Below, in pieces: positions 1 through 12,586 of a stretch of DNA of 12,586 bases (position 1 is the stretch's first letter; the number at the start of each line of letters is the position of its first letter). The DNA is from Geosiphon pyriformis uo1. Lineage: Eukaryota > Fungi > Glomeromycota. The notes below the pieces were generated by a model, which had not been told where the DNA came from, made no database searches, and saw nothing but the letters and a program-made list of their open reading frames with translations. The position numbers were made by a program, and so were the translations under genes. The stretch is from contig JAAOMT010000335.1 in assembly GCA_016748015.1 (NCBI GenBank), positions 1 through 12,586 of the forward strand, given 5' to 3'.

Positions 1-640
1 TAGATGGGATGGTGGTGTGGGCATATGGGTGGTAAGGGGGCTACATTGGGGTATAGAGGTGGATATGGTGGGATAATTGGGTATGGGGCATGTGGGCACA
101 TTTTGACATGTTTGGTCTGGGTCTGGGCATATGGGGCCACATGGGGAATCTTGGGTATAGTGTGATTGGGGCCACATCGTGGCTATGGGGTAGAATATGG
201 GCATATTGTGGTAGTATGGGGCCACATGGGCTACAATAGGGGATGGGCATATGGGGAATGGTTGTGGTATGGGCATATTGGGGACTCTGGTTTGAGAGGG
301 CTACAATGGGATATGGGCATAGGGGCTACAATTTGGTGTGGGTGGTGGTATTGTGGGATAGCGCATATTGGGTGGTATCTGGCGTGATATGGGTATTGGT
401 GGCAGGTGCCACATGGTGGTTAGGGTTGCCACATTGGGCATATCGTGAGTATGGGCCACATCTTGGCAGATATGAGCTACATAGTGGTATAATGGGACAT
501 CTAGGGCAACATCCTGTTGCATATGGGTATTGGATGCCACATAGGGCATATCGGGTGGTGTATATGGGTATAGGGCAATGGTTGGGATAGGGATAGGGTA
601 TAGTGGGATATGGGATACCTCTAGTGGCATAGGGACTACA
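1..640 (+). repeat. Distal end of the G/T-skewed arm (also shown at 10187-10826)
   Basis: Same vocabulary as 6830-10186. The first 60 nt contain 29 G, 16 T, 12 A and 3 C. Composition switches abruptly at ~640. Confidence 0.9.
463..493 (+). promoter_or_regulatory. Possible sigma70-type promoter upstream of the structured region
   Basis: TTGGCA (463-468), a 19-nt spacer and TATAAT (488-493) with the extended TG (TGGTATAAT), ~155 nt upstream of unit 1 on the RNA strand. It could be chance in this composition, and the host domain is unknown. Confidence 0.2.
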
Positions 641-649
641 TGGATACTC

Positions 650-3125
650 AGCCTCATGCTTTACACCATCATGGTGGATGGTAACCCGACTAACTCGTAA
701 GTCATTCCGAATTAGCCCATACTCTACCCGCCCCGGGTAGTACGGTTGTGGAAGGCTTCAGCATCCCAACCCTAACTTTCTATTTGCCCCTCGGCCGTAC
801 CAAACGGCCTGAGGGTACTGCTAAGGGTTCGCCTTTGGTTGAAACAAAGGGTACAACCCAAAAGCTATCGGATAGTACTCTGGTTAGGAGCCTATAAGGT
901 CCGATTTAAGTCACAACCTTGTAGCATAACCTCCCAAACCTATCCTATGAATTAGGAAATGGATAAGATGGTTGTTATAGGAAACTATAAGATTTGAGAT
1001 AGAGTGGTGGATATGGTTAGGAGCACATGGTTAGTACTAGAGACAGGTCCCATCAAACCTCTTACTTAACCAAACAATCCCCTCCATGAACTGGTAATCC
1101 ATAATTATGGGTAGTCTTAGCTTGTCAGTCTCCGCTGCGGATGGCAAGACCCGTAACATGGTACTATACCATTGCGGCCAACCAACTTACTTCAACAAGC
1201 CCCCCATAACCTGAAGTCAGATCCTTTCGGGAAACCGAATAGTCTTTCTAAAGGTCCTTCATGAACACTGTCTAGTGGGGTGCTGACCATGATGGTTACT
1301 CCATATCCATACAGTGATTCAACTGTGCACTCTTCCCAATACGTTACAAGGGGGTGTGTAAGGTATTGGATGGACCACGCTGTACTCTCCCCGAACTCCC
1401 AAAGTTCATAGGTACAGGGCCCATTCGACTTTAACACCTATACTCTTGAGCAGCTTAGATAGGTCCATAACTGAGTAGTACGTTGGTAATATTGGTACTT
1501 TCAAAGAATACCTCCTCCTAATCACAAACCTCCCAAACATTTGGACCCGAAGTTTATCCTTAGAATGGTGCTTTATTTGGTAGGCTTCTATGGGTTACCA
1601 TAACCACACTACACACACCAAACCAGTCATCACATCTCACCAGTGTATTGGGTGCCTAAAATTAGAAACAGGCATCCGATCATACCAACCCGATCCTCGG
1701 TCTATCCACAAAGGATAGGGCGGAACAGGTATGGCTAAGTAGCTTCTAGGATATACACCCCCAAGATGGATTGTTGTCCACGCTTTGGCATAGTTCGGTG
1801 GCATGGTCAGATTCCTATCCCAATAGGAACCCCCCCACCAACCGGTTATACCTACCACTATTGCTTTAGACATGGCCGTCCGGTACACTCCCTAGGGGTT
1901 AGGGTAATGTACACTTCGGCCGTGGACACATCGGGGTCCCTTCCTACACTGAGGTATGCTTAAAGGATTGAGGTATCCTTGGACGGCATGAAGGGCCACA
2001 CGTGTGGTCATATAACTCAGTTCAGCCTTCCCCACTATTCAATGGTTATTGTGGGAGAAAGGCTTAGCCTAATCCTACATTAACCTTAACTGGGGGTTAG
2101 GGTAAATGGGAATTGGACTCCGATCCACGTATATCCCTGTATCGCTACCCATCTTATCTGTCACAGCCAAGGAACCAGTACTCTTACCCTCTCCAAATAT
2201 GGATTGGGTGTAGACAGATTATTCGGACTTACAGTACTACTCTCTTCATAAAGAAGGAGTTCTACCATAACTCAGTTACCTATACTTTAAGCTATAGGGA
2301 TAAGCTCTTGTAGTAATAGACTTAAGCCAACCGAACTCCCGTCCTCCTAAGGAAGTGTCCAGGTGCATAGTAGGTAGTCCATTGGGATGGGAACCCCCCC
2401 ATAGCACGGCAGCTCTGAGTGGTAACCACCATTTAGACTGTACGTGTCTCTAGATCCCTCCATTTGGCCCCTAATACGTCTGGAAGGCGTCGAAGGGTAT
2501 CCTCCTCCCCAGGTAACACGAATCCCCTGTACAACACCCTTACCCCCCCCCAAATTGGGGGGATAAGAAAGGGATTGCGATTACTCGCCATTACCTTACT
2601 CTTGCCTAATCGATGATTAGGCTGGAGTGGACAGGCTGGTTGGCTATCCACCAACTGTAAGATTCCTCAGTAATGAGAACTCTTAAATACTCCCCTTACA
2701 ATGGGGTTGATATTTGACCAGTTGTGGAGAACCTACCACTTGTCCGGGTACAGGGCTCGTAATACCTGGGGGGAACTATGTACCACTGTAATGTTACCAT
2801 CCCCACACTGAACCATCTATTGTGGCCAGGCGTAGGCAGTGGGACTGTATCCTTAGCCTTAAAGCTATGGTTCATGTAGGAACCCACGTGGTTCCCTTCC
2901 TATTGCCAAACAACCCCATGATGATTACAGTAGGTTACATTGAACACACACTTCTGGACTAAGGTTTGAGAGGACCTATAGGGTAAACCTTACCATAGGC
3001 ACCTTAGTCCCTTCCCCGGGATAAAGGTTCATCCGGTACAAGTAGTGGGGATCTCCCAGACTTGCTCAGGAAAGGGGGGCTTGTGCTGTAGCTGCATGTA
3101 CCAAACCAACTGTACACGTCTACAT
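650..3125 (+). ncRNA. Large structured RNA unit, copy 1 (~2.48 kb; A part 650-2657, B part 2658-3125); family unassigned
   Basis: Dense hairpins: CCCTC-GGCCGT-accaa-ACGGCC-t-GAGGG 788-815, TTATAG-gaaa-CTATAA 975-990, TTCGG-gaaa-CCGAA ~1226-1239, CTCA-gtaa-TGAG 2666-2677. Long-range helices ATGGTAACCC 678-687 / GGGTTACCAT 1592-1601 and AGAGTG 1001-1006 / CACTCT 1328-1333. Colinear anchors are shared with copies 2 and 3. Confidence 0.72.
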
Positions 3126-5399
3126 AGCCTGCATGCCTTGACACCATCATGGTGGATGGTAACCCATCGTCGGGAACAATACGATCTATGCTTAGTACCA
3201 CCCCACCCCCTTTTTAATGGGGCGATTGACCTTGGTAGCCTAAAGCATCCCGTCTCAATACGAACTTGCCCCCCCCCTCGGGTACCAAACCCTGAGGTGG
3301 AGGACAGCCAAGGGTCCCTGTATAGTATGGCGCTATACCATATCGGAGCCCTATTGATTAGATAGGTACTAATGTACGATTTGTCTAACCTGGTAGCTAT
3401 ATCATGCTACACCTTACTTCCCTTGTTAAATACAGGGATAGGTAAGTATGGAATCTGATCTAGTTTTACTGCACTAGCAGATTAGAGATAAAGTGGTATG
3501 GTCAATCGGGTCCTAAATAGATTGAATCTATAAAGGATACCCAACCCCCCCCCCCCCCAACTTTAACCACCACTCTTCTCCTAACTATAAAGGGGGGATA
3601 TAGTAGGATAGGACCCCTCTACACTACCTAATGGGTACCCAAACCCATCCTGATGTGGAGGGCCCTATTCGACTTGAACATCAATTCTACTTCTATATTA
3701 TCCTGGTGGGTCCAACAGGTTAAATACAAGAATGGTATTATCCAATCACTATACCAAACAACTTCCAATCAAACCAATAACTAATATTCCCTTTGCACAC
3801 CTACCTCTTAGCTAGTGGGGGATCCTCTCTAAAGTATAGGAGGATAAGCTATTTGGAAAGTTGGGTACATAGTAATGACCTATCAAAGGGCTCTAAACTA
3901 GTTCCCAGTGCATATCCCAGTCATTAATCTAACCATAACCATTTAATATAACAATCTTGAATCCCTACTCAGCGGGGTCCTTGACGTGTCCATGCCATGA
4001 GGGATCATATGGTATATGGCCAGTGCCTGAGGCTCGTTCCACATATGGAATGAGGCAGGGATTAGGGTCATGGGAATTACCCCTTCCCACCCCAATATAC
4101 CTTTGGGTTCCTGCCACGTCCATAAGTACTCTTCTTAGAGTCTTAACCTACTCGCGGAGGGACCACCTGTAAAGGTAACCGGTACTTAATCAATAGGTTA
4201 TTGTACATTTGTTACCACCGATCCATGTTTTGATTGGGCGTCCTCCCATGGGTGGGGTTCGTCAGGATGGTCACATATGGCATACCTATCGATCATAAAG
4301 GTATTACTTACCTCTTGGTAGATAGTAAGCACCTCATATTGGCAAACTCGGACTTGGAACTGGGGCATGAGTAGGAACAACTTATACACTTGTAGATCCC
4401 TAACCTAGGGATCCCTGCCCCACACTTAGTATAGTTGGAGATATAAAGTATCAATCTACTTAAGCCCCCACACTCCCATGGCCTTAGTAGACCAACAGGG
4501 ATTTGAGTAGGTAGTCCATTTGTGTGGGACCCTACAGGATTCAGAGTCCTGTGAAGGTCCCCCCATTACAGGCTGTGTGTCCCCTGTGTCTCTATCCATT
4601 TAGGCCCCGAAGACGGTTGTCAACCGTCGCGACGGGTATCCTCTTTAACAGGCAACCCGTGTACCCTGTCCGCCATGAGAGAGGGCTCCATAACTGGGGC
4701 CCCCCAACTCTCCCTCACTACCTGGGGACCTAGGTAATGAGAGGCAATTCTACTTTATCTCACCCCTATAATTAGGGGCGGATCCCCCAATCTGGTAGTC
4801 ATACAAGGTGGGGAGTCTAATGGATAGGCTGGTGGCTCTACACCTACTGTAAGACACCCTAGTAATAGGTATTGTCCGGATCCCTTACCACCCCTTCCGG
4901 GTGATTAAAGGGGGCTTTTGGGAGATCTGATTATACCCTATAGCCGATACACAGTAGTGAATGACCTCCTGCCCGTCCGTGCAGGACAGGGTCTTGTAAG
5001 GCCTGTTATCAACTTTTATCACTGCCTGAATCCAAAGTATCCGTCTTAGGCGTTCCCATGAAGTGTGGGTATCCTAAGTGCAGTGGGATAGCAAGTTCTG
5101 GGACCATCAGCCTAATTCAGCTTCCCTGGCTCATAACCGGGGGGGTTCGGGATGGGATAATATATCCATCCAACTCTCAGTTATTACCCCTTTGGACCAT
5201 ACAGAATGGATCGTAGATGGTGCAAAGTCAACAGGAACTAAGGTCTACTTGGTGGATAGGACCCTGGTACCACTGACCTACCTCCAGAGCACTTGTGCTC
5301 TACCAATGATTAGGGTTCATGTTGTACATACTGTCTTGACAGTCTGCGGAGGGATAGGGGCTGATGGCTAAGCTGCAGTGTCCGAACCCTTGCACACCG
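3126..5399 (+). ncRNA. Large structured RNA unit, copy 2 (~2.27 kb; A part 3126-4850, B part 4851-5399)
   Basis: Exact 25-mer ACACCATCATGGTGGATGGTAACCC at 3141-3165 = 663-687. Exact 15-mer AGTAGGTAGTCCATT at 4506-4520 = 2369-2383. CCTATTCGACTTGAACA ~3664-3680 vs CCCATTCGACTTTAACA ~1420-1436. TGGATAGGCTGGTGGCT..ACTGTAAGA ~4821-4854 vs ~2628-2662. Covarying hairpin CCTA-gtaa-TAGG 4858-4869. Confidence 0.72.
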
Positions 5400-6812
5400 T
5401 CTTCATGCCCTAGGATAACTTACCAATCCTTGGTGTGATTGACTACCCCTGTCGTCCGATACTAATCGGACGGTCGGGAAACTGGGCTCCCATAGGAGCC
5501 CCAGATGGCAGGGATCCGCCTCCCACCACTCCCCCCGTTTGCCCACTCGGTGGTACCAATCCCCTGAGGGTGCGGGCGATAGCATTCTGTCTTTAAGACA
5601 GTTTGGCACTCTGCCATATCGTAGTCTGTATTGATTAGATACCTACTGAGGTCCGATTTAAGTCCACCTGTAATCCAGCCTGATTGTCCACCCCCCTTAT
5701 TATGAGGGAATGGGGAAATAGGATAGGTGACTGGTGTGACTGCCATAGCAGGTTGAGATAGGATGGCGTACTTATTACTATGGTAGGGCCAGGTCATAAA
5801 CAACCTCCCTCCCAACAGCTACTTCCTTAATCGACCCCCACCCCAACCCGGTCCCCCTCATGAGCCCCTTTACAAGCAGAGGTAACTGTACTTGTCTACC
5901 CATACACCAAGGGGGGTGGAAGATTCAGGTGTATGAGTATACGCTTACCCCCCCCCACACGGGGAGTGTGGTAGTCCGTTGACTGGCTATCCCCACCGGA
6001 GGTTCTAATGAGGTCCCATTCGATCGGTTGGGAATCGACTATATGGTAACTGATATTTGGTTTATGCCCATGGCCTCCCCAAACTATCATAGAAGATAGC
6101 CCTTTTACCCAAACCATCCTTTCCATAGCCTAACAGGAGGTGTTATATTCTGGTAGGACCATTATGGACTCCCCACTGACCTTAAACGGTCACGGGTCCA
6201 GGACCCTATCGACTTTAACATAAGGACAACTCTCTGATCCCCTAAGGTCCTAGGAACTATCACATATTTAAATGTCTGGTAGGGGTAGGAAGATAAGGTC
6301 TAACAACCTGACAATAGTACCTTCTCAGAATAAGAACCCATTGTGCCCCCCCCTCACTTTGGAGGTATGGATATGTAAGGATATCCAAGTAGGTGAGTGG
6401 TATCAATAGCCCCAAACACCGGGCCCTAGGAATATAACAGCCTAGTGCCTATGCTAATCCTCATCCGAAAGGGATCCTACTATCATGTGGTAGTCGCCCC
6501 CCAACCACCATACCAAACCTTATACACCTCATAATCCCCTAGCCTCTCTACGTTGGTATACTATCACAGGTTTATACTGAGGCCTTTCCCTACAGTACAT
6601 CTAAGGAAGTGGCAAATGTAGTGGCTGGGTAGCACTCCTTTCCCAATGGAATCCGGGGTACCCCAGAACCTGGGATCTCCTACAGCCTCATGGCGCATTG
6701 TGTTGCTACCCCTGTACAGATACCTTGTTGGGTAAACCCTCTATCATAAGGGAAGATCCTTTACACAGTACTTATGGTTATTGTGGGCTTTAGGCCCCCT
6801 ACCTAGCCGTAT
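5400..6812 (+). ncRNA. Large structured RNA unit, copy 3 (~1.4 kb; A part only, shortened middle, no B part)
   Basis: Exact 16-mer AGGTCCGATTTAAGTC at 5649-5664 = 897-912. TATTGATTAGATA 5629-5641 = 3352-3364. CCCTATCGACTTTAACA ~6204-6220. CTAAGGAAGTG 6601-6611 = 2347-2357. CCCCTGTACA ~6709 vs ~2524. Closing helix GGCTGGGTAG 6623-6632 / CTACCTAGCC 6799-6808. Confidence 0.65.
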
Positions 6813-6829
6813 AAAGGCATATTTAAGGT

Positions 6830-9800
6830 AGTCATATGGTGGGATATAATGGGACATGGTGGAATATAGAGGGTGGTTATGGGGTATAGTGGATATAGGT
6901 ATAGTGGATGGGGTAGAATAGTGGGGCCACAGGGGGCATTTGTATATGGTGGCCACATTTTGTGCCACATGGTGGAATGGGAATACCTCTTGGTGGGCAT
7001 AAGGGTTGATATATAGGTCTAGGGACTACCTTTGGTTATATGGGCTACATAGGGTAGGGTCTAGGATACCACATGGGGATTCTAGAGGGTGATACATGGT
7101 GGCCTCTTTGTTGAAAGGTCCTTGTGTGCCACATCCGGGCATAGTGGTGAGGGATCTGGGGGTTAGATAGGGGTAGTGGGTGGTATTGTTGGGTAGTGGG
7201 TTCTTAGGGGCCACATGGGGCATTGGGTTGAGTGTCCCATCTTGTGGGTAGAGGGGACATGGTTTGTAGTGGGGCCACTGGGCATATTGGAAATAGTGTT
7301 ATAGTGGAATATGGTAGGACATGGGCTATTGGGTGGGATAGATGGGACATATGGGTATGGGGCAGATAGGGACTATTGTGTAGAGGTATTGGGGTAGTAA
7401 TGGGCAGATGGTGGTAATAGTGGTTGATAGTGGGATATTTACTATTAGGGGCCACATACTGTGGCAGTTGGGGTTTGGTGGGATAATGGGCTACATTGTG
7501 GGATCTAGTGGGTGTATGGTGGGGATCTTTAGTATTTGGTGCCACATCGGGCAACATTGGGGCTACCTAGTGGGGTAGTGGTTCATAGTGGGTTAGTGGG
7601 CTATAGTGGGATAGTGGGGCCACACTGTGGCACATGGTTGGGATCCTGTGAATAGGGGATCTAGGGTATGGGGATGCCACATCCTGTTGCAGATGGGTTT
7701 GTATGGGCCACACATTTTGTGGTATTTGGGTAGTATGGGGCTACAGAGGGAATGGTTGTTGGGCTACCTATGGGGCATAGGGCTATATTGTGTGTGGTGG
7801 ATATGAGCTAGAGTGCTACATAGGGCATAGGGCATATGGGATAGTAGTCGGGGATGGGTCATGGGGCAGATAGGGGATATCTGGGTATATAGGGCATCTG
7901 GGATAGGTATAGTGGGATATCCTGGTATGGGACAGGATGGGTCAGGGTCATAGGGGTATGGTTGGGCCACATAGGGCATATGGGCATCATATGGTAGTTG
8001 TGGTATAGGGGCATATGGTGGGACATATTGGATGCCCCAGGGCATAAGGGGTAGAATATGACATCCTCTGGGATATTTGGAGTATGGGGCCACATATGGC
8101 ATATGGGTCTAGGGAATGGTTGGGATAGTGCCCATCTTGTTTGGCTGGTATTCTAGGATATCACATAGTGTGATTGGTGAGATGCCCCATCTCAGGGCAT
8201 AGTGGCTATTAGTGGAATATGTAATATAGTGGTGGCACATGGTTGGATAGGGATACCACACGGGCATATGGTATGATGGGTAGTGGGTAATAGGGTAGAG
8301 TGGTTATGGGACATCATGGGAGTTATGGGATGGGTAGGTATGGGTCTGTCTCATATCATGTGTGGTATGGTATAGGATGTCTCCTATGGGGCTCTGGTAC
8401 CTAGGGCTTGGTTATTAGTGTGCCACATAGGTAGATGGGCATAGGGAGGTAGAATGGGGGCAGATTGTGGATACCACTTGGTCTATTGGGTAGTGGCCCC
8501 TCTGGGCATGGGTAGGTCACATCTTGTGGTATATGGGCACATAGTGGAAGTGGTGGGGAATCTGGGCATATGGGTGGGATATAGTGCCACATCTTTGGAC
8601 ATCTGGGACATTAGGGATACCAACATCGTGGTATATTGGGATGGGGAAGGGATAGTGGTTATGGGTATGGTGGGTAGAATGGGTATGTGATTGCCCATTG
8701 GGCATAGGGAGGTCTAGGGGATAGGGAAGGGTGGTTAGGGGGATAGAGGCCACATTTGGATTCTGAGGGGCCCTGGGGGCCTCTGTTGATGTGTCACCTA
8801 TGGGACCTGTGTGGTAGAGGGTCTGGGCACATTTGGCATAGTGGGTGGGGTACTCTGGGCACATGGTCTGGTCTGGGTATCTCATGGGTTATGTGGCATC
8901 TTTGTATGGGTTATAGTGGATGCCCAGGGGGCAGATAGAGGTCTAGTGGGGCCCCTTTTTGGCCCCTTTTGTGGGATATCCTATGAGTATGGTGGTAGAT
9001 GGTGGGATAGTTTGATTAGGTGGCATATCCTATGGGATCTAGTGCCACATCCATGTTGCTTGGGAGGTGCCACATAGGGCTCCATAGGTATAGGTGGATA
9101 GGGGCTATTGTGGAAGATATTGGATACCACCTCTTGTGGCACATTGGGATGGTAGGGATCTAGGGCTAGAGGATATAGGATGCCACATGGGGCATAGTAG
9201 GACATTGGATGCCCCCATCATATGGGAATAGTGGTAGGTATAGGTTCTTGTGGTTATGGTTGATAGGGCTACATAGGGTATCTGGGTGTATGGCACATAA
9301 TTGGCCACATCCTGTGCATAGTGGCATCATGTTGGATGGAGCTATTGTTGGTAGAGTAGTGTAAGGGTTGGTAGAGTAGTGGTATAGGGTAATATGGGTC
9401 TGGGGCCCTAGTTGTGGTATCTTGTGGCACATGGTACATATGGTGGGATATGGTGGTAATATTGTGCCACCTGGCTATGGGCTACATCATGTGGGTCTGG
9501 TGTGGTATATGGGTAGAGGGGCATGGTGGATATATTGGGTATTGTTTGGTGCCACATCGGGCACATTGGTTATTAGGGTGCCCCATTGTGGGATCTGGGT
9601 TGGAGTGTCACTATTGTTTGCCACATCATGTTGCATATGGTGGATACATTTGGTCATGGGTCTGGGGCCCCTTTGGTTTTGGGGCCAATGGGGGTTGGGG
9701 GTGCAAGTGGGGGCCAATTTGGGTTTGGGGAATTGGTGTTGGGGGGACCAATTTGTGTGGGTTGGGGGGCCAATTTGGGTTGGGGGTAATTGTGTTTGGT

Positions 9801-10186
9801 GTCCAATGGTTGGGCCAGTTGAATTTGCGTTGAATTTGTGTTTGGGGACCAATTGGGGTTGGGCTAATTTGGTTTGGGGGGCCTATTTAGAATTTTGGGT
9901 GGGTTTGGGAATTTGGGTTTTGGCCTATTTGTGGGGCCAACTTGGGAATTTTGGGTGTCAATTGGGATGGGTTTGTGGCCAATTTGGAATTTGGATTGGC
10001 CATTGGTGTCAATTTTGATGGTGGTGGGCCTCTTGGGAATTTGGGTTGGGCACATTTGGTGGATATGGTAGAGTTTGGACATTGGGGATATGGGCGATTT
10101 GGTATTGGTGGGATAGGCAGTGGGCCACATGGGGCATATAAGTGATATGGTGGGATAGAGAGTGTGCCACATGTTGGATGTGGTGG
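6830..10186 (+). repeat. G/T-skewed low-complexity arm of dispersed short words; continues through the origin into 1-640 (~4 kb total)
   Basis: C is rare and mostly confined to the words GCCACAT, GCTACA, GGCACAT, GGGCATA, GGATCT and GGATAC. Roughly 50-60 GCCACA/GCTACA/GGCACA-type words by eye, all on one strand and in mixed reading frames. Longer recurrences include GGTGCCACATCGGGCA(A)CATTGG at ~7538 and ~9548. Confidence 0.9.
9680..10050 (+). repeat. Degenerate (CC/G)AATTTGGG / GTTTGGG repeat subdomain with dense G-runs
   Basis: AATT cores at 9716, 9731, 9750, 9772, 9788, 9822, 9833, 9851, 9866, 9891, 9910, 9947, 9960, 9981, 9988, 10011 and 10038, flanked by G-runs. The GCCACAT word is absent here. 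Confidence 0.8.
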
Positions 10187-12586
10187 TAGATGGGATGGTG
10201 GTGTGGGCATATGGGTGGTAAGGGGGCTACATTGGGGTATAGAGGTGGATATGGTGGGATAATTGGGTATGGGGCATGTGGGCACATTTTGACATGTTTG
10301 GTCTGGGTCTGGGCATATGGGGCCACATGGGGAATCTTGGGTATAGTGTGATTGGGGCCACATCGTGGCTATGGGGTAGAATATGGGCATATTGTGGTAG
10401 TATGGGGCCACATGGGCTACAATAGGGGATGGGCATATGGGGAATGGTTGTGGTATGGGCATATTGGGGACTCTGGTTTGAGAGGGCTACAATGGGATAT
10501 GGGCATAGGGGCTACAATTTGGTGTGGGTGGTGGTATTGTGGGATAGCGCATATTGGGTGGTATCTGGCGTGATATGGGTATTGGTGGCAGGTGCCACAT
10601 GGTGGTTAGGGTTGCCACATTGGGCATATCGTGAGTATGGGCCACATCTTGGCAGATATGAGCTACATAGTGGTATAATGGGACATCTAGGGCAACATCC
10701 TGTTGCATATGGGTATTGGATGCCACATAGGGCATATCGGGTGGTGTATATGGGTATAGGGCAATGGTTGGGATAGGGATAGGGTATAGTGGGATATGGG
10801 ATACCTCTAGTGGCATAGGGACTACATGGATACTCAGCCTCATGCTTTACACCATCATGGTGGATGGTAACCCGACTAACTCGTAAGTCATTCCGAATTA
10901 GCCCATACTCTACCCGCCCCGGGTAGTACGGTTGTGGAAGGCTTCAGCATCCCAACCCTAACTTTCTATTTGCCCCTCGGCCGTACCAAACGGCCTGAGG
11001 GTACTGCTAAGGGTTCGCCTTTGGTTGAAACAAAGGGTACAACCCAAAAGCTATCGGATAGTACTCTGGTTAGGAGCCTATAAGGTCCGATTTAAGTCAC
11101 AACCTTGTAGCATAACCTCCCAAACCTATCCTATGAATTAGGAAATGGATAAGATGGTTGTTATAGGAAACTATAAGATTTGAGATAGAGTGGTGGATAT
11201 GGTTAGGAGCACATGGTTAGTACTAGAGACAGGTCCCATCAAACCTCTTACTTAACCAAACAATCCCCTCCATGAACTGGTAATCCATAATTATGGGTAG
11301 TCTTAGCTTGTCAGTCTCCGCTGCGGATGGCAAGACCCGTAACATGGTACTATACCATTGCGGCCAACCAACTTACTTCAACAAGCCCCCCATAACCTGA
11401 AGTCAGATCCTTTCGGGAAACCGAATAGTCTTTCTAAAGGTCCTTCATGAACACTGTCTAGTGGGGTGCTGACCATGATGGTTACTCCATATCCATACAG
11501 TGATTCAACTGTGCACTCTTCCCAATACGTTACAAGGGGGTGTGTAAGGTATTGGATGGACCACGCTGTACTCTCCCCGAACTCCCAAAGTTCATAGGTA
11601 CAGGGCCCATTCGACTTTAACACCTATACTCTTGAGCAGCTTAGATAGGTCCATAACTGAGTAGTACGTTGGTAATATTGGTACTTTCAAAGAATACCTC
11701 CTCCTAATCACAAACCTCCCAAACATTTGGACCCGAAGTTTATCCTTAGAATGGTGCTTTATTTGGTAGGCTTCTATGGGTTACCATAACCACACTACAC
11801 ACACCAAACCAGTCATCACATCTCACCAGTGTATTGGGTGCCTAAAATTAGAAACAGGCATCCGATCATACCAACCCGATCCTCGGTCTATCCACAAAGG
11901 ATAGGGCGGAACAGGTATGGCTAAGTAGCTTCTAGGATATACACCCCCAAGATGGATTGTTGTCCACGCTTTGGCATAGTTCGGTGGCATGGTCAGATTC
12001 CTATCCCAATAGGAACCCCCCCACCAACCGGTTATACCTACCACTATTGCTTTAGACATGGCCGTCCGGTACACTCCCTAGGGGTTAGGGTAATGTACAC
12101 TTCGGCCGTGGACACATCGGGGTCCCTTCCTACACTGAGGTATGCTTAAAGGATTGAGGTATCCTTGGACGGCATGAAGGGCCACACGTGTGGTCATATA
12201 ACTCAGTTCAGCCTTCCCCACTATTCAATGGTTATTGTGGGAGAAAGGCTTAGCCTAATCCTACATTAACCTTAACTGGGGGTTAGGGTAAATGGGAATT
12301 GGACTCCGATCCACGTATATCCCTGTATCGCTACCCATCTTATCTGTCACAGCCAAGGAACCAGTACTCTTACCCTCTCCAAATATGGATTGGGTGTAGA
12401 CAGATTATTCGGACTTACAGTACTACTCTCTTCATAAAGAAGGAGTTCTACCATAACTCAGTTACCTATACTTTAAGCTATAGGGATAAGCTCTTGTAGT
12501 AATAGACTTAAGCCAACCGAACTCCCGTCCTCCTAAGGAAGTGTCCAGGTGCATAGTAGGTAGTCCATTGGGATGGGAACCCCCCC
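10187..12586 (+). repeat. Second copy of 1-2400 (wrap-around overlap of a circular contig)
   Basis: Start, end and all translated ORFs are identical to 1-2400. The overlap is a round 2,400 nt, which suggests it was added during windowing. Confidence 0.93.
10836..12586 (+). ncRNA. Wrap-around duplicate of the first 1.75 kb of structured unit 1
   Basis: Identical to 650-2400 at an offset of 10,186. Confidence 0.65.

Follow-up and report, generated by a model that had tools for sequence, protein, structure and literature searches.

The stretch of DNA considered here, called the window, is the whole of contig C81 (JAAOMT010000335.1, 12,586 bases) in the 792-contig, 128-Mb assembly of the fungus Geosiphon pyriformis uo1. 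The end of the window repeats its beginning exactly, which gives a period of 10,186 bp (repeat family D1), so that the contig represents either a circle of this length or a tandem array whose copies are perfectly homogenised. C81 and a sister contig, C164, span 1.2-1.4 periods of their respective elements; the contigs of short words from a public sequencing run, which also cover the element, look the same for a circle and for an array. Each period has two parts, a compositionally even region at 650-6812 (A 0.26, C 0.26, G 0.22, T 0.26), occupied by three related units, and a 4-kb G/T-rich arm that directly follows the third unit:

650 to 3125, + strand: unit U1, full length, 2476 bp; collinear by blastn and MAFFT with U2, U3 and the three units of C164
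3126 to 5410, + strand: unit U2, full length, 2285 bp; collinear by blastn and MAFFT alignment
5411 to 6812, + strand: unit U3, truncated and internally deleted, 1402 bp; collinear by blastn and alignment
664 to 676, + strand: palindrome CACCAT-C-ATGGTG at the unit start, recurring at 3142-3154
6813 to 10186, + strand: G/T-rich arm made of degenerate repeats (G 0.38, T 0.30, C 0.12; GC skew +0.45 to +0.66)
1 to 649, + strand: continuation of the arm across the start of the period
10187 to 12586, + strand: exact second copy of 1-2400, with 0 mismatches over 2400 bp

A preliminary description of this DNA, which missed both the 10,186-bp period and the sister element, had recognised three diverged tandem copies within 650-6812. 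This arrangement is upheld by MAFFT alignment and by collinear matches in a relaxed blastn search (650-1008/3126-3497, 2310-2530/4448-4669 and 3273-3490/5542-5760; E values 1e-7 to 1e-13), and the anchor motifs were found in place (GAGATA at 996, 3485 and 5755; TCGACTT at 1425, 3669 and 6209). Over aligned columns the three units are 41-45% identical, with numerous short indels. Near-invariant islands of 15-40 nucleotides (nt) follow one another in a constant order in all units and are separated by fast-evolving, indel-rich stretches; blocks of 19-27 nt are identical between units that otherwise differ at about 40% of positions. The starts of U1 and U2 have a 40-nt block in common (92% identity), whereas U3 begins with a different hairpin (5424-5441) in place of the palindrome, and its 5' block is of the type found in C164. 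The third copy had been presented as a shorter, 1.4-kb version of the same RNA. It is instead a truncated and internally deleted copy, and it was not recovered by covariance model R1, which represents the 3' domain. Runs of 8-14 cytosines occur at 2543, 3269, 3545, 5948 and 6346, on the + strand of the units only, and no poly-G run of at least 8 is present there.

Contig C164, 10,259 bp long, repeats exactly every 7,305 bp, its successive periods being 100% alike over 2954 bp, and its minus strand carries three further units of about 2.4 kb (V1-V3). It lacks the G/T-rich arm, so this arm appears to be dispensable. Another family member is represented by a fragment, the 2-kb contig C83. When model R1 was searched over the whole assembly, only its five training copies matched. 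Over reliable columns the V units are 0.65-0.72 identical among themselves and 0.50-0.60 identical to the U units. Since the V units are mutually closest, it cannot be claimed that the trimeric arrangement predates the split of the two elements; one-to-one orthology between the units of C81 and C164 was considered and found unsupported.

Diverged monomers (41-58% identity across units) combined with identical successive periods, over 2400 bp in C81 and 2954 bp in C164, form the classic pattern of a higher-order repeat, and both elements display it. It has accordingly to be asked whether the units are untranscribed repetitive DNA, either a higher-order-repeat satellite or the backbone of a plasmid or organellar circle, whose hairpins act at the DNA level. 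Such hairpins could have a part in starting replication, could form in its single-stranded intermediates or could be palindromes bound by proteins; alternatively, template-switch mutation could create and maintain them without selection on RNA. The repeat pattern and the fact that the units have no known transcript are what such an explanation would lead one to expect; it is the main rival explanation, but is considered somewhat unlikely in view of the structural evidence given below.

The units show no sign of coding for protein, in agreement with the preliminary description, which had argued from the frequent indels. No open reading frame (ORF) above chance was found in C81 or C164 under seven stop-codon sets. 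The longest ORFs of the units, with standard stops, reach about 120 codons or less; ORFs of 212 and 199 amino acids both lie in the skewed arm, and the long frames obtained with single-stop codes are confined to it. The reversed (mirrored) sequence has no long ORF either, so that coding under the standard code, code 4, single-stop codes and mirroring all came out blank. Three-base periodicity is at the level of random sequence. Because the summed period-3 spectrum is unchanged by base relabelling, its flatness also rules out a base-substitution cipher or heavily recoded ordinary genes, although a flat spectrum does not speak to frameshift-type editing every few codons.

Searches for known relatives were equally negative. 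Rfam 15, which includes OLE, GOLLD, ROOL, group I and II introns, self-cleaving ribozymes and RNase P, gave no match on either strand of C81 at gathering score or at E values up to 10, and none to C164. Ribosomal DNA (rDNA) in any orientation was rejected: there is no small subunit (SSU), 5.8S or large subunit (LSU) match in Rfam, and none of ten universal ribosomal RNA (rRNA) motifs, among them the 515F site, the sarcin-ricin loop and the peptidyl-transferase centre, occurs with up to 2-3 mismatches in the forward, reverse-complement, reversed or complemented sequence. A kinetoplast minicircle was rejected as well. The universal minicircle sequence GGGGTTGGTGTA is absent from C81 and C164, and its 2-mismatch matches are at chance level (5 found in C81 against 4.98 expected, and likewise in C164). 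For a bacterial plasmid or phage, distant-mode blastn against PLSDB and INPHARED was blank and ORFs are lacking. Patterns made from two conserved blocks were without a match in IMG/VR, in the genomes of the GTDB species and among 241 million metagenome records.

The evidence for conserved structure comes from the six-unit alignment, folded by sliding alifold with Watson-Crick pairs only and counting pairs in helices of four or more. This gave 86 conserved pairs, compared with 32±13 in column-shuffled alignments that preserve the gap pattern and conservation. Pairs that covary, with at least two pair types, number 34 against 5.1±3.7 in the shuffles, whose maximum in 60 trials was 17. Base pairs are thus kept by compensatory change beyond chance, in local hairpins and in one long-range helix only:

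1001 to 1007, + strand: 5' strand of the long-range helix, with its partner at 1327-1333 (homologues 3490-3496/3570-3576 and 5760-5766/6114-6120)
790 to 814, + strand: hairpin H1, with the invariant loop GUACCAAW (homologues 3276-3297 and 5546-5569)
2476 to 2490, + strand: hairpin H3 (homologue 4613-4627)
2638 to 2656, + strand: hairpin H4, inside the best conserved block (homologue 4831-4848)
2666 to 2677, + strand: hairpin H5, with a GNRA tetraloop (homologue 4858-4869)
4968 to 4985, + strand: hairpin H6 (homologue 2733-2750)

The long-range helix is present in all six units and pairs in 39 of 42 cells; three of its seven positions (3, 4 and 7) have changed on both sides. It spans 74-355 nt in the units of the window and about 330-360 nt in those of C164. 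The motifs first noticed in it recur as described (AGAGTG at 1001 with CACTCT at 1328, AAAGTGGT at 3490 with ACCACTCT at 3569, AGGATGG at 5760 with CCATCCT at 6114), and the claim that helices are kept while their sequence changes is borne out. Among the local hairpins, H1 carries its invariant loop on inner stems that differ by unit (GGCCG/CGGCC, GGG/CCC, GGUGG/CCACC and GCAG/CUGC), and H3 has five different stems in five units, with both sides changed in four of seven pairs. The stems of H5 (CTCAGTAATGAG at 2666 and CCTAGTAATAGG at 4858 in the window) are CUCA/UGAG, CCUA/UAGG, CCUAU/AUAGG and CCCU/AGGG, closed by the loops GUAA, GUAA, GAGA and GAAA, respectively. H6 alternates between CCUGC/GCAGG (U2 and V1) and CCAUA/UAUGG (V2 and V3), with both-side changes in several pairs. 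H4 belongs to a 27-nt block that is identical across V1-V3; an exchange of A-U for U-A that separates U1 from the V units (columns 16 and 28) is a by-eye reading, the fold given by the tool pairing these columns otherwise.

These features weigh against the DNA-level explanation. A helix with three compensatory positions whose strands lie 74 to some 360 nt apart would hardly form in duplex DNA, four or five different stems in H3 and H5 imply repeated independent compensation, and loops that stay invariant while their stems vary are usual in RNA or in single-stranded recognition sites. Taken together, the invariant blocks, free spacers and repeatedly compensated stems in six copies suggest long selection on a single-stranded fold.

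Which strand would be read, and whether the fold is one of RNA, is less clear. The preliminary description had chosen the + strand on the basis of G-U pairs and GNRA loops, and only the latter part of the argument stands. GNRA loops on stems of at least four pairs number 11 on the + strand, compared with 1.98±1.43 in dinucleotide shuffles, none of 200 of which reached 11; on the opposite strand the mirror class numbers 4 against 2.1 expected. This excess, although modest (11 against 4), is the best sign pointing to an RNA read from the + strand, and an enrichment restricted to one strand also speaks against a role at the DNA level. The candidate G-U helices are indeed present in the sequence (TTATGGGT at 1105 with ACCCGTAA at 1149; CTCTACA at 3617 with TGTGGAG at 3654). 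Over the whole set, however, exceptions within pairs of Watson-Crick majority comprise 14 G-U and 16 A-C combinations, so that there is no G-U excess. As to folding energy, non-overlapping 150-nt windows of the units do fold better than their dinucleotide shuffles, with a mean z of -0.89±0.16 on the + strand and -0.97±0.13 on the - strand. This equality of the two strands, seen in the alifold energies as well, and the missing G-U excess are points in favour of the DNA-level explanation.

The proposal that selection acts on an RNA fold in each copy holds in part, that is, for local hairpins and the one long-range helix; it does not extend to a global fold. The alifold structure conservation index ranges from 0 to 0.43 and is about 0 over the 5' two thirds, a region in which the sequences align poorly. 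Long-range covarying helices, sought all against all, gave 13 and 16 hits, no better than the controls with 2-15 and 7-22, so that this search had no power. A single rRNA-sized fold therefore remains conjecture.

The arm (6813-10186 together with 1-649) differs from the units in its strong skew. Its motifs are degenerate and do not form a clean tandem array, and of the 19 G-quadruplex motifs on the + strand 18 lie within it. The words GCCACAT and GGGCATATGGG recur in it, and a compositionally similar arm, in the opposite orientation, lies at the end of another contig, C133 (about 3000-4473).

The composition of the element sets it apart from the rest of the assembly. Fungal contigs are at 21-24% GC with unremarkable dinucleotide ratios, whereas C81 and C164 have 45-50% GC, with dinucleotide ratios of 1.3 for TA, 0.39 for CG, 0.55 for GC, 1.5-1.7 for CC/GG and less than 1 for AA/TT. 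Judged by its composition, the element does not match the AT-rich chromosomes of the fungus. The same odd profile is found in at least six further small contigs without ORFs (C82, C84, C165, C85, C133 and C135) (43-48% GC; TA 1.15-1.5, CG 0.13-0.3, GC 0.4-0.6, CC/GG 1.5-1.8); three of them have exact terminal overlaps that correspond to periods of 7,265, 5,658 and 5,771 bp. They share poly-C/G runs and an excess of the tetramers GGGG, GGTA, TGGG and GTAC with C81 and C164; the long C/G runs are the only long words shared among these sibling contigs, which have no sequence in common with C81 or with each other, no internal units and no period-3 signal.

Since the siblings resemble C81 and C164 in composition and yet have folding z values of about 0 and no GNRA excess, the structure signal is peculiar to the C81/C164 family and does not simply follow from composition. 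The same observation may be turned the other way, as circular-mapping, ORF-less relatives by dinucleotide signature that are devoid of structure would fit untranscribed DNA, and so would the fact that the tetramer vocabulary of the units is also that of the G/T-rich arm. That a public fungal assembly contains a whole set of contigs that lack ORFs, map as circles and differ in composition from the fungus should in any case be flagged or explained.

A bacterial or organellar type tRNA-Leu(UAG) is found on the otherwise gene-free, circular-mapping C165 (1562-1645, + strand). The same 84-nt gene occurs on C135 (2961-3044, - strand), with flanks 88% alike over about 150 bp, and a 32-nt piece of it has no exact match in the metagenome collection. 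The COX1 gene has no match anywhere in the assembly, so that the mitochondrial genome seems to have been removed or never assembled. The 18S genes are dispersed on large contigs (C658 and C659). The rDNA of a second eukaryote lies on C402 (4415-6462, - strand), where an 18S gene of about 2.05 kb with GC-rich expansion segments is only 78-90% identical to the fungal 18S on C658. Contig C163 (6.7 kb, 33% GC) aligns at 100-3417 to its own reverse complement over 3.3 kb with 65% identity, and has direct repeats offset by about 160-180 bp, strong period-3 throughout and a 290-amino-acid ORF; it is unrelated to the present finding.

These surroundings raise the question of whether the circles are what remains of a multipartite organellar genome of a co-sampled organism, the units being cryptic, fragmented or edited genes, or constant regions. 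The existence of several independent contigs of 5.7-10.2 kb that map as circles and agree in composition, the tRNA on one of them (C165) and on contig C135, the second eukaryote and the lack of COX1, which leaves room for organelle contigs with recognisable genes having been removed, would all fit. An origin of this kind is nevertheless improbable. The circles share no constant region and show no period-3 signal anywhere, no rRNA fragment appears even at the most permissive E value, and the universal minicircle sequence is missing; moreover, three paralogous units with conserved hairpins are unlike gene modules. CpG content is normal in the rDNA of the second eukaryote but not in the circles, and assignment of the element to that organism was rejected for this reason.

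The physical reality of the element was considered through public sequencing runs of the same sample. In contigs of one run, 650-6649 is covered in four pieces without any difference, at a word depth of about 125-150, and relatives of the element have word depths of 120-195. This run may be the source of the assembly, so that the exact agreement is not an independent confirmation. Most of its contigs are tiny (mean 74 nt), and the pieces covering the element measure 0.6-2.3 kb, a difference in size that suggests a copy number well above that of the nuclear genome. A purely technical origin, in which amplification, library preparation or assembly created the element as an artefact, would agree with the presence of the stretch in one of three runs of a single sample, with the unnatural look of its dinucleotides (TA above 1.2, CG and GC both depleted) and with the lack of anything similar in the collections searched. 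It is very improbable, given the exact match to high-depth contigs, the exclusion of a reversed or re-coded sequence and the pattern of blocks, spacers and compensatory changes in six copies, which needs long evolution under selection.

The explanation favoured here is that the units are genes for large structured non-coding RNAs, probably of a new family, on a plasmid-like, protein-free element. The two signals that favour it are selection on a single-stranded fold and the + strand excess of GNRA loops; as a reading of sequence, it may be given a probability of roughly 45%. Its non-fungal composition and its grouping with ORF-less, circular-mapping contigs make a replicon that is plasmid-like or associated with an organelle the most likely identity of the element, its host being either the fungus or another organism sampled with it. 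A bolder version is rather doubtful: the element would be a self-contained replicon that encodes no protein, is propagated as high-copy circles and yields nothing but paralogous structured RNAs of about 2.4 kb, which would constitute a new class of very large non-coding RNA. The RNAs of such a replicon would possibly be catalytic or act as a scaffold, and its host could be the fungus, its organelle or endobacterium, or a co-sampled protist. A role as ribozyme or multimeric scaffold, put forward in the preliminary description, is conjecture.

Each copy of the element comprises three paralogous units of ancient origin, about 2.4 kb in size except for the truncated third, and a 4-kb G/T-rich arm. 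Under the favoured explanation, the + strand would be transcribed as single units or as one long precursor, which could then be cut near the palindromes at the unit borders to release large structured non-coding RNAs. The conserved loops and blocks may represent binding or catalytic surfaces of these RNAs, and the G-rich arm might be a control region for replication or transcription acting via R-loops or G-quadruplexes.

Several observations weigh against the existence of such RNA genes. Folding signals do not differ between strands, G-U exceptions are not in excess, the structure conservation index is low, and part of the covariation tracks a single split (U2 and V1 versus V2 and V3). The long-range helix is predicted in only two of six units (U1 and V2, with a pairing probability of about 1), and the units are rich in C on the + strand and contain poly-C runs there, which is unusual for a structured RNA. 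None of the listed runs that contain the stretch is recorded as RNA, the only such run, X1, being DNA by guess, and the stretch is missing from the two other runs of the same sample. No homologue was found in the metagenome, genome, viral, plasmid and phage collections searched, and all the evidence comes from one sample, with only six copies of the unit available.

Besides rRNA, very few natural RNAs longer than 1 kb that are held by conserved structure are, to our knowledge, on record, and none of them is the sole content of a replicon. If the units are transcribed, orphan structured RNAs would reach about three times their present size range, and the units would provide three natural paralogues per element, which would be useful for comparative structure work and cryo-electron microscopy. 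If they are not, they would still be an unusual case of DNA hairpins maintained by compensatory change within a repeat.

Known systems resemble the element in different respects. Higher-order satellites, such as centromeric alpha satellite, also combine diverged monomers with identical successive copies; C81 differs from these in its complex 2.4-kb monomers, its covarying hairpins, its strand-specific GNRA loops and a 4-kb skewed arm present in one of the two elements. Like rDNA, whether as the circles of Naegleria and Euglena or as ordinary repeats, C81 has a length of about 10 kb, of which about 6 kb resembles structural RNA and about 4 kb repetitive spacer, and presumably a high copy number, but it lacks any SSU, LSU or 5.8S signal and its three parts are paralogous to one another. 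Many small, largely gene-free circles, as in this sample, are known from kinetoplasts, from the 'empty' plastid minicircles of dinoflagellates and from the chromosomes of diplonemids; the circles of the sample have no common core or constant region and no universal minicircle sequence, and their GC content is 43-48%.

Closer parallels are found among structured RNAs. OLE, GOLLD and ROOL share with the units the lack of coding capacity, conserved blocks, covarying stems and GNRA loops, and often reside on mobile or extrachromosomal DNA; they are of about 580-800 nt and single copy, whereas the units measure about 2.4 kb, come in threes on an ORF-less element, have no Rfam match and belong to a host that is not a recognisable bacterium. 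The Neurospora VS plasmid is a high-copy, protein-free mitochondrial DNA that forms head-to-tail multimers and has a structured RNA as its sole product. VS has identical repeats of 881 nt, is a defined ribozyme and needs a helper retroplasmid, whereas the units are diverged paralogues for which no ribozyme was found and no helper identified. In its manner of working, the element comes closest to the VS plasmid of Neurospora or to the large orphan RNAs of bacteria, while apparently being a member of neither.

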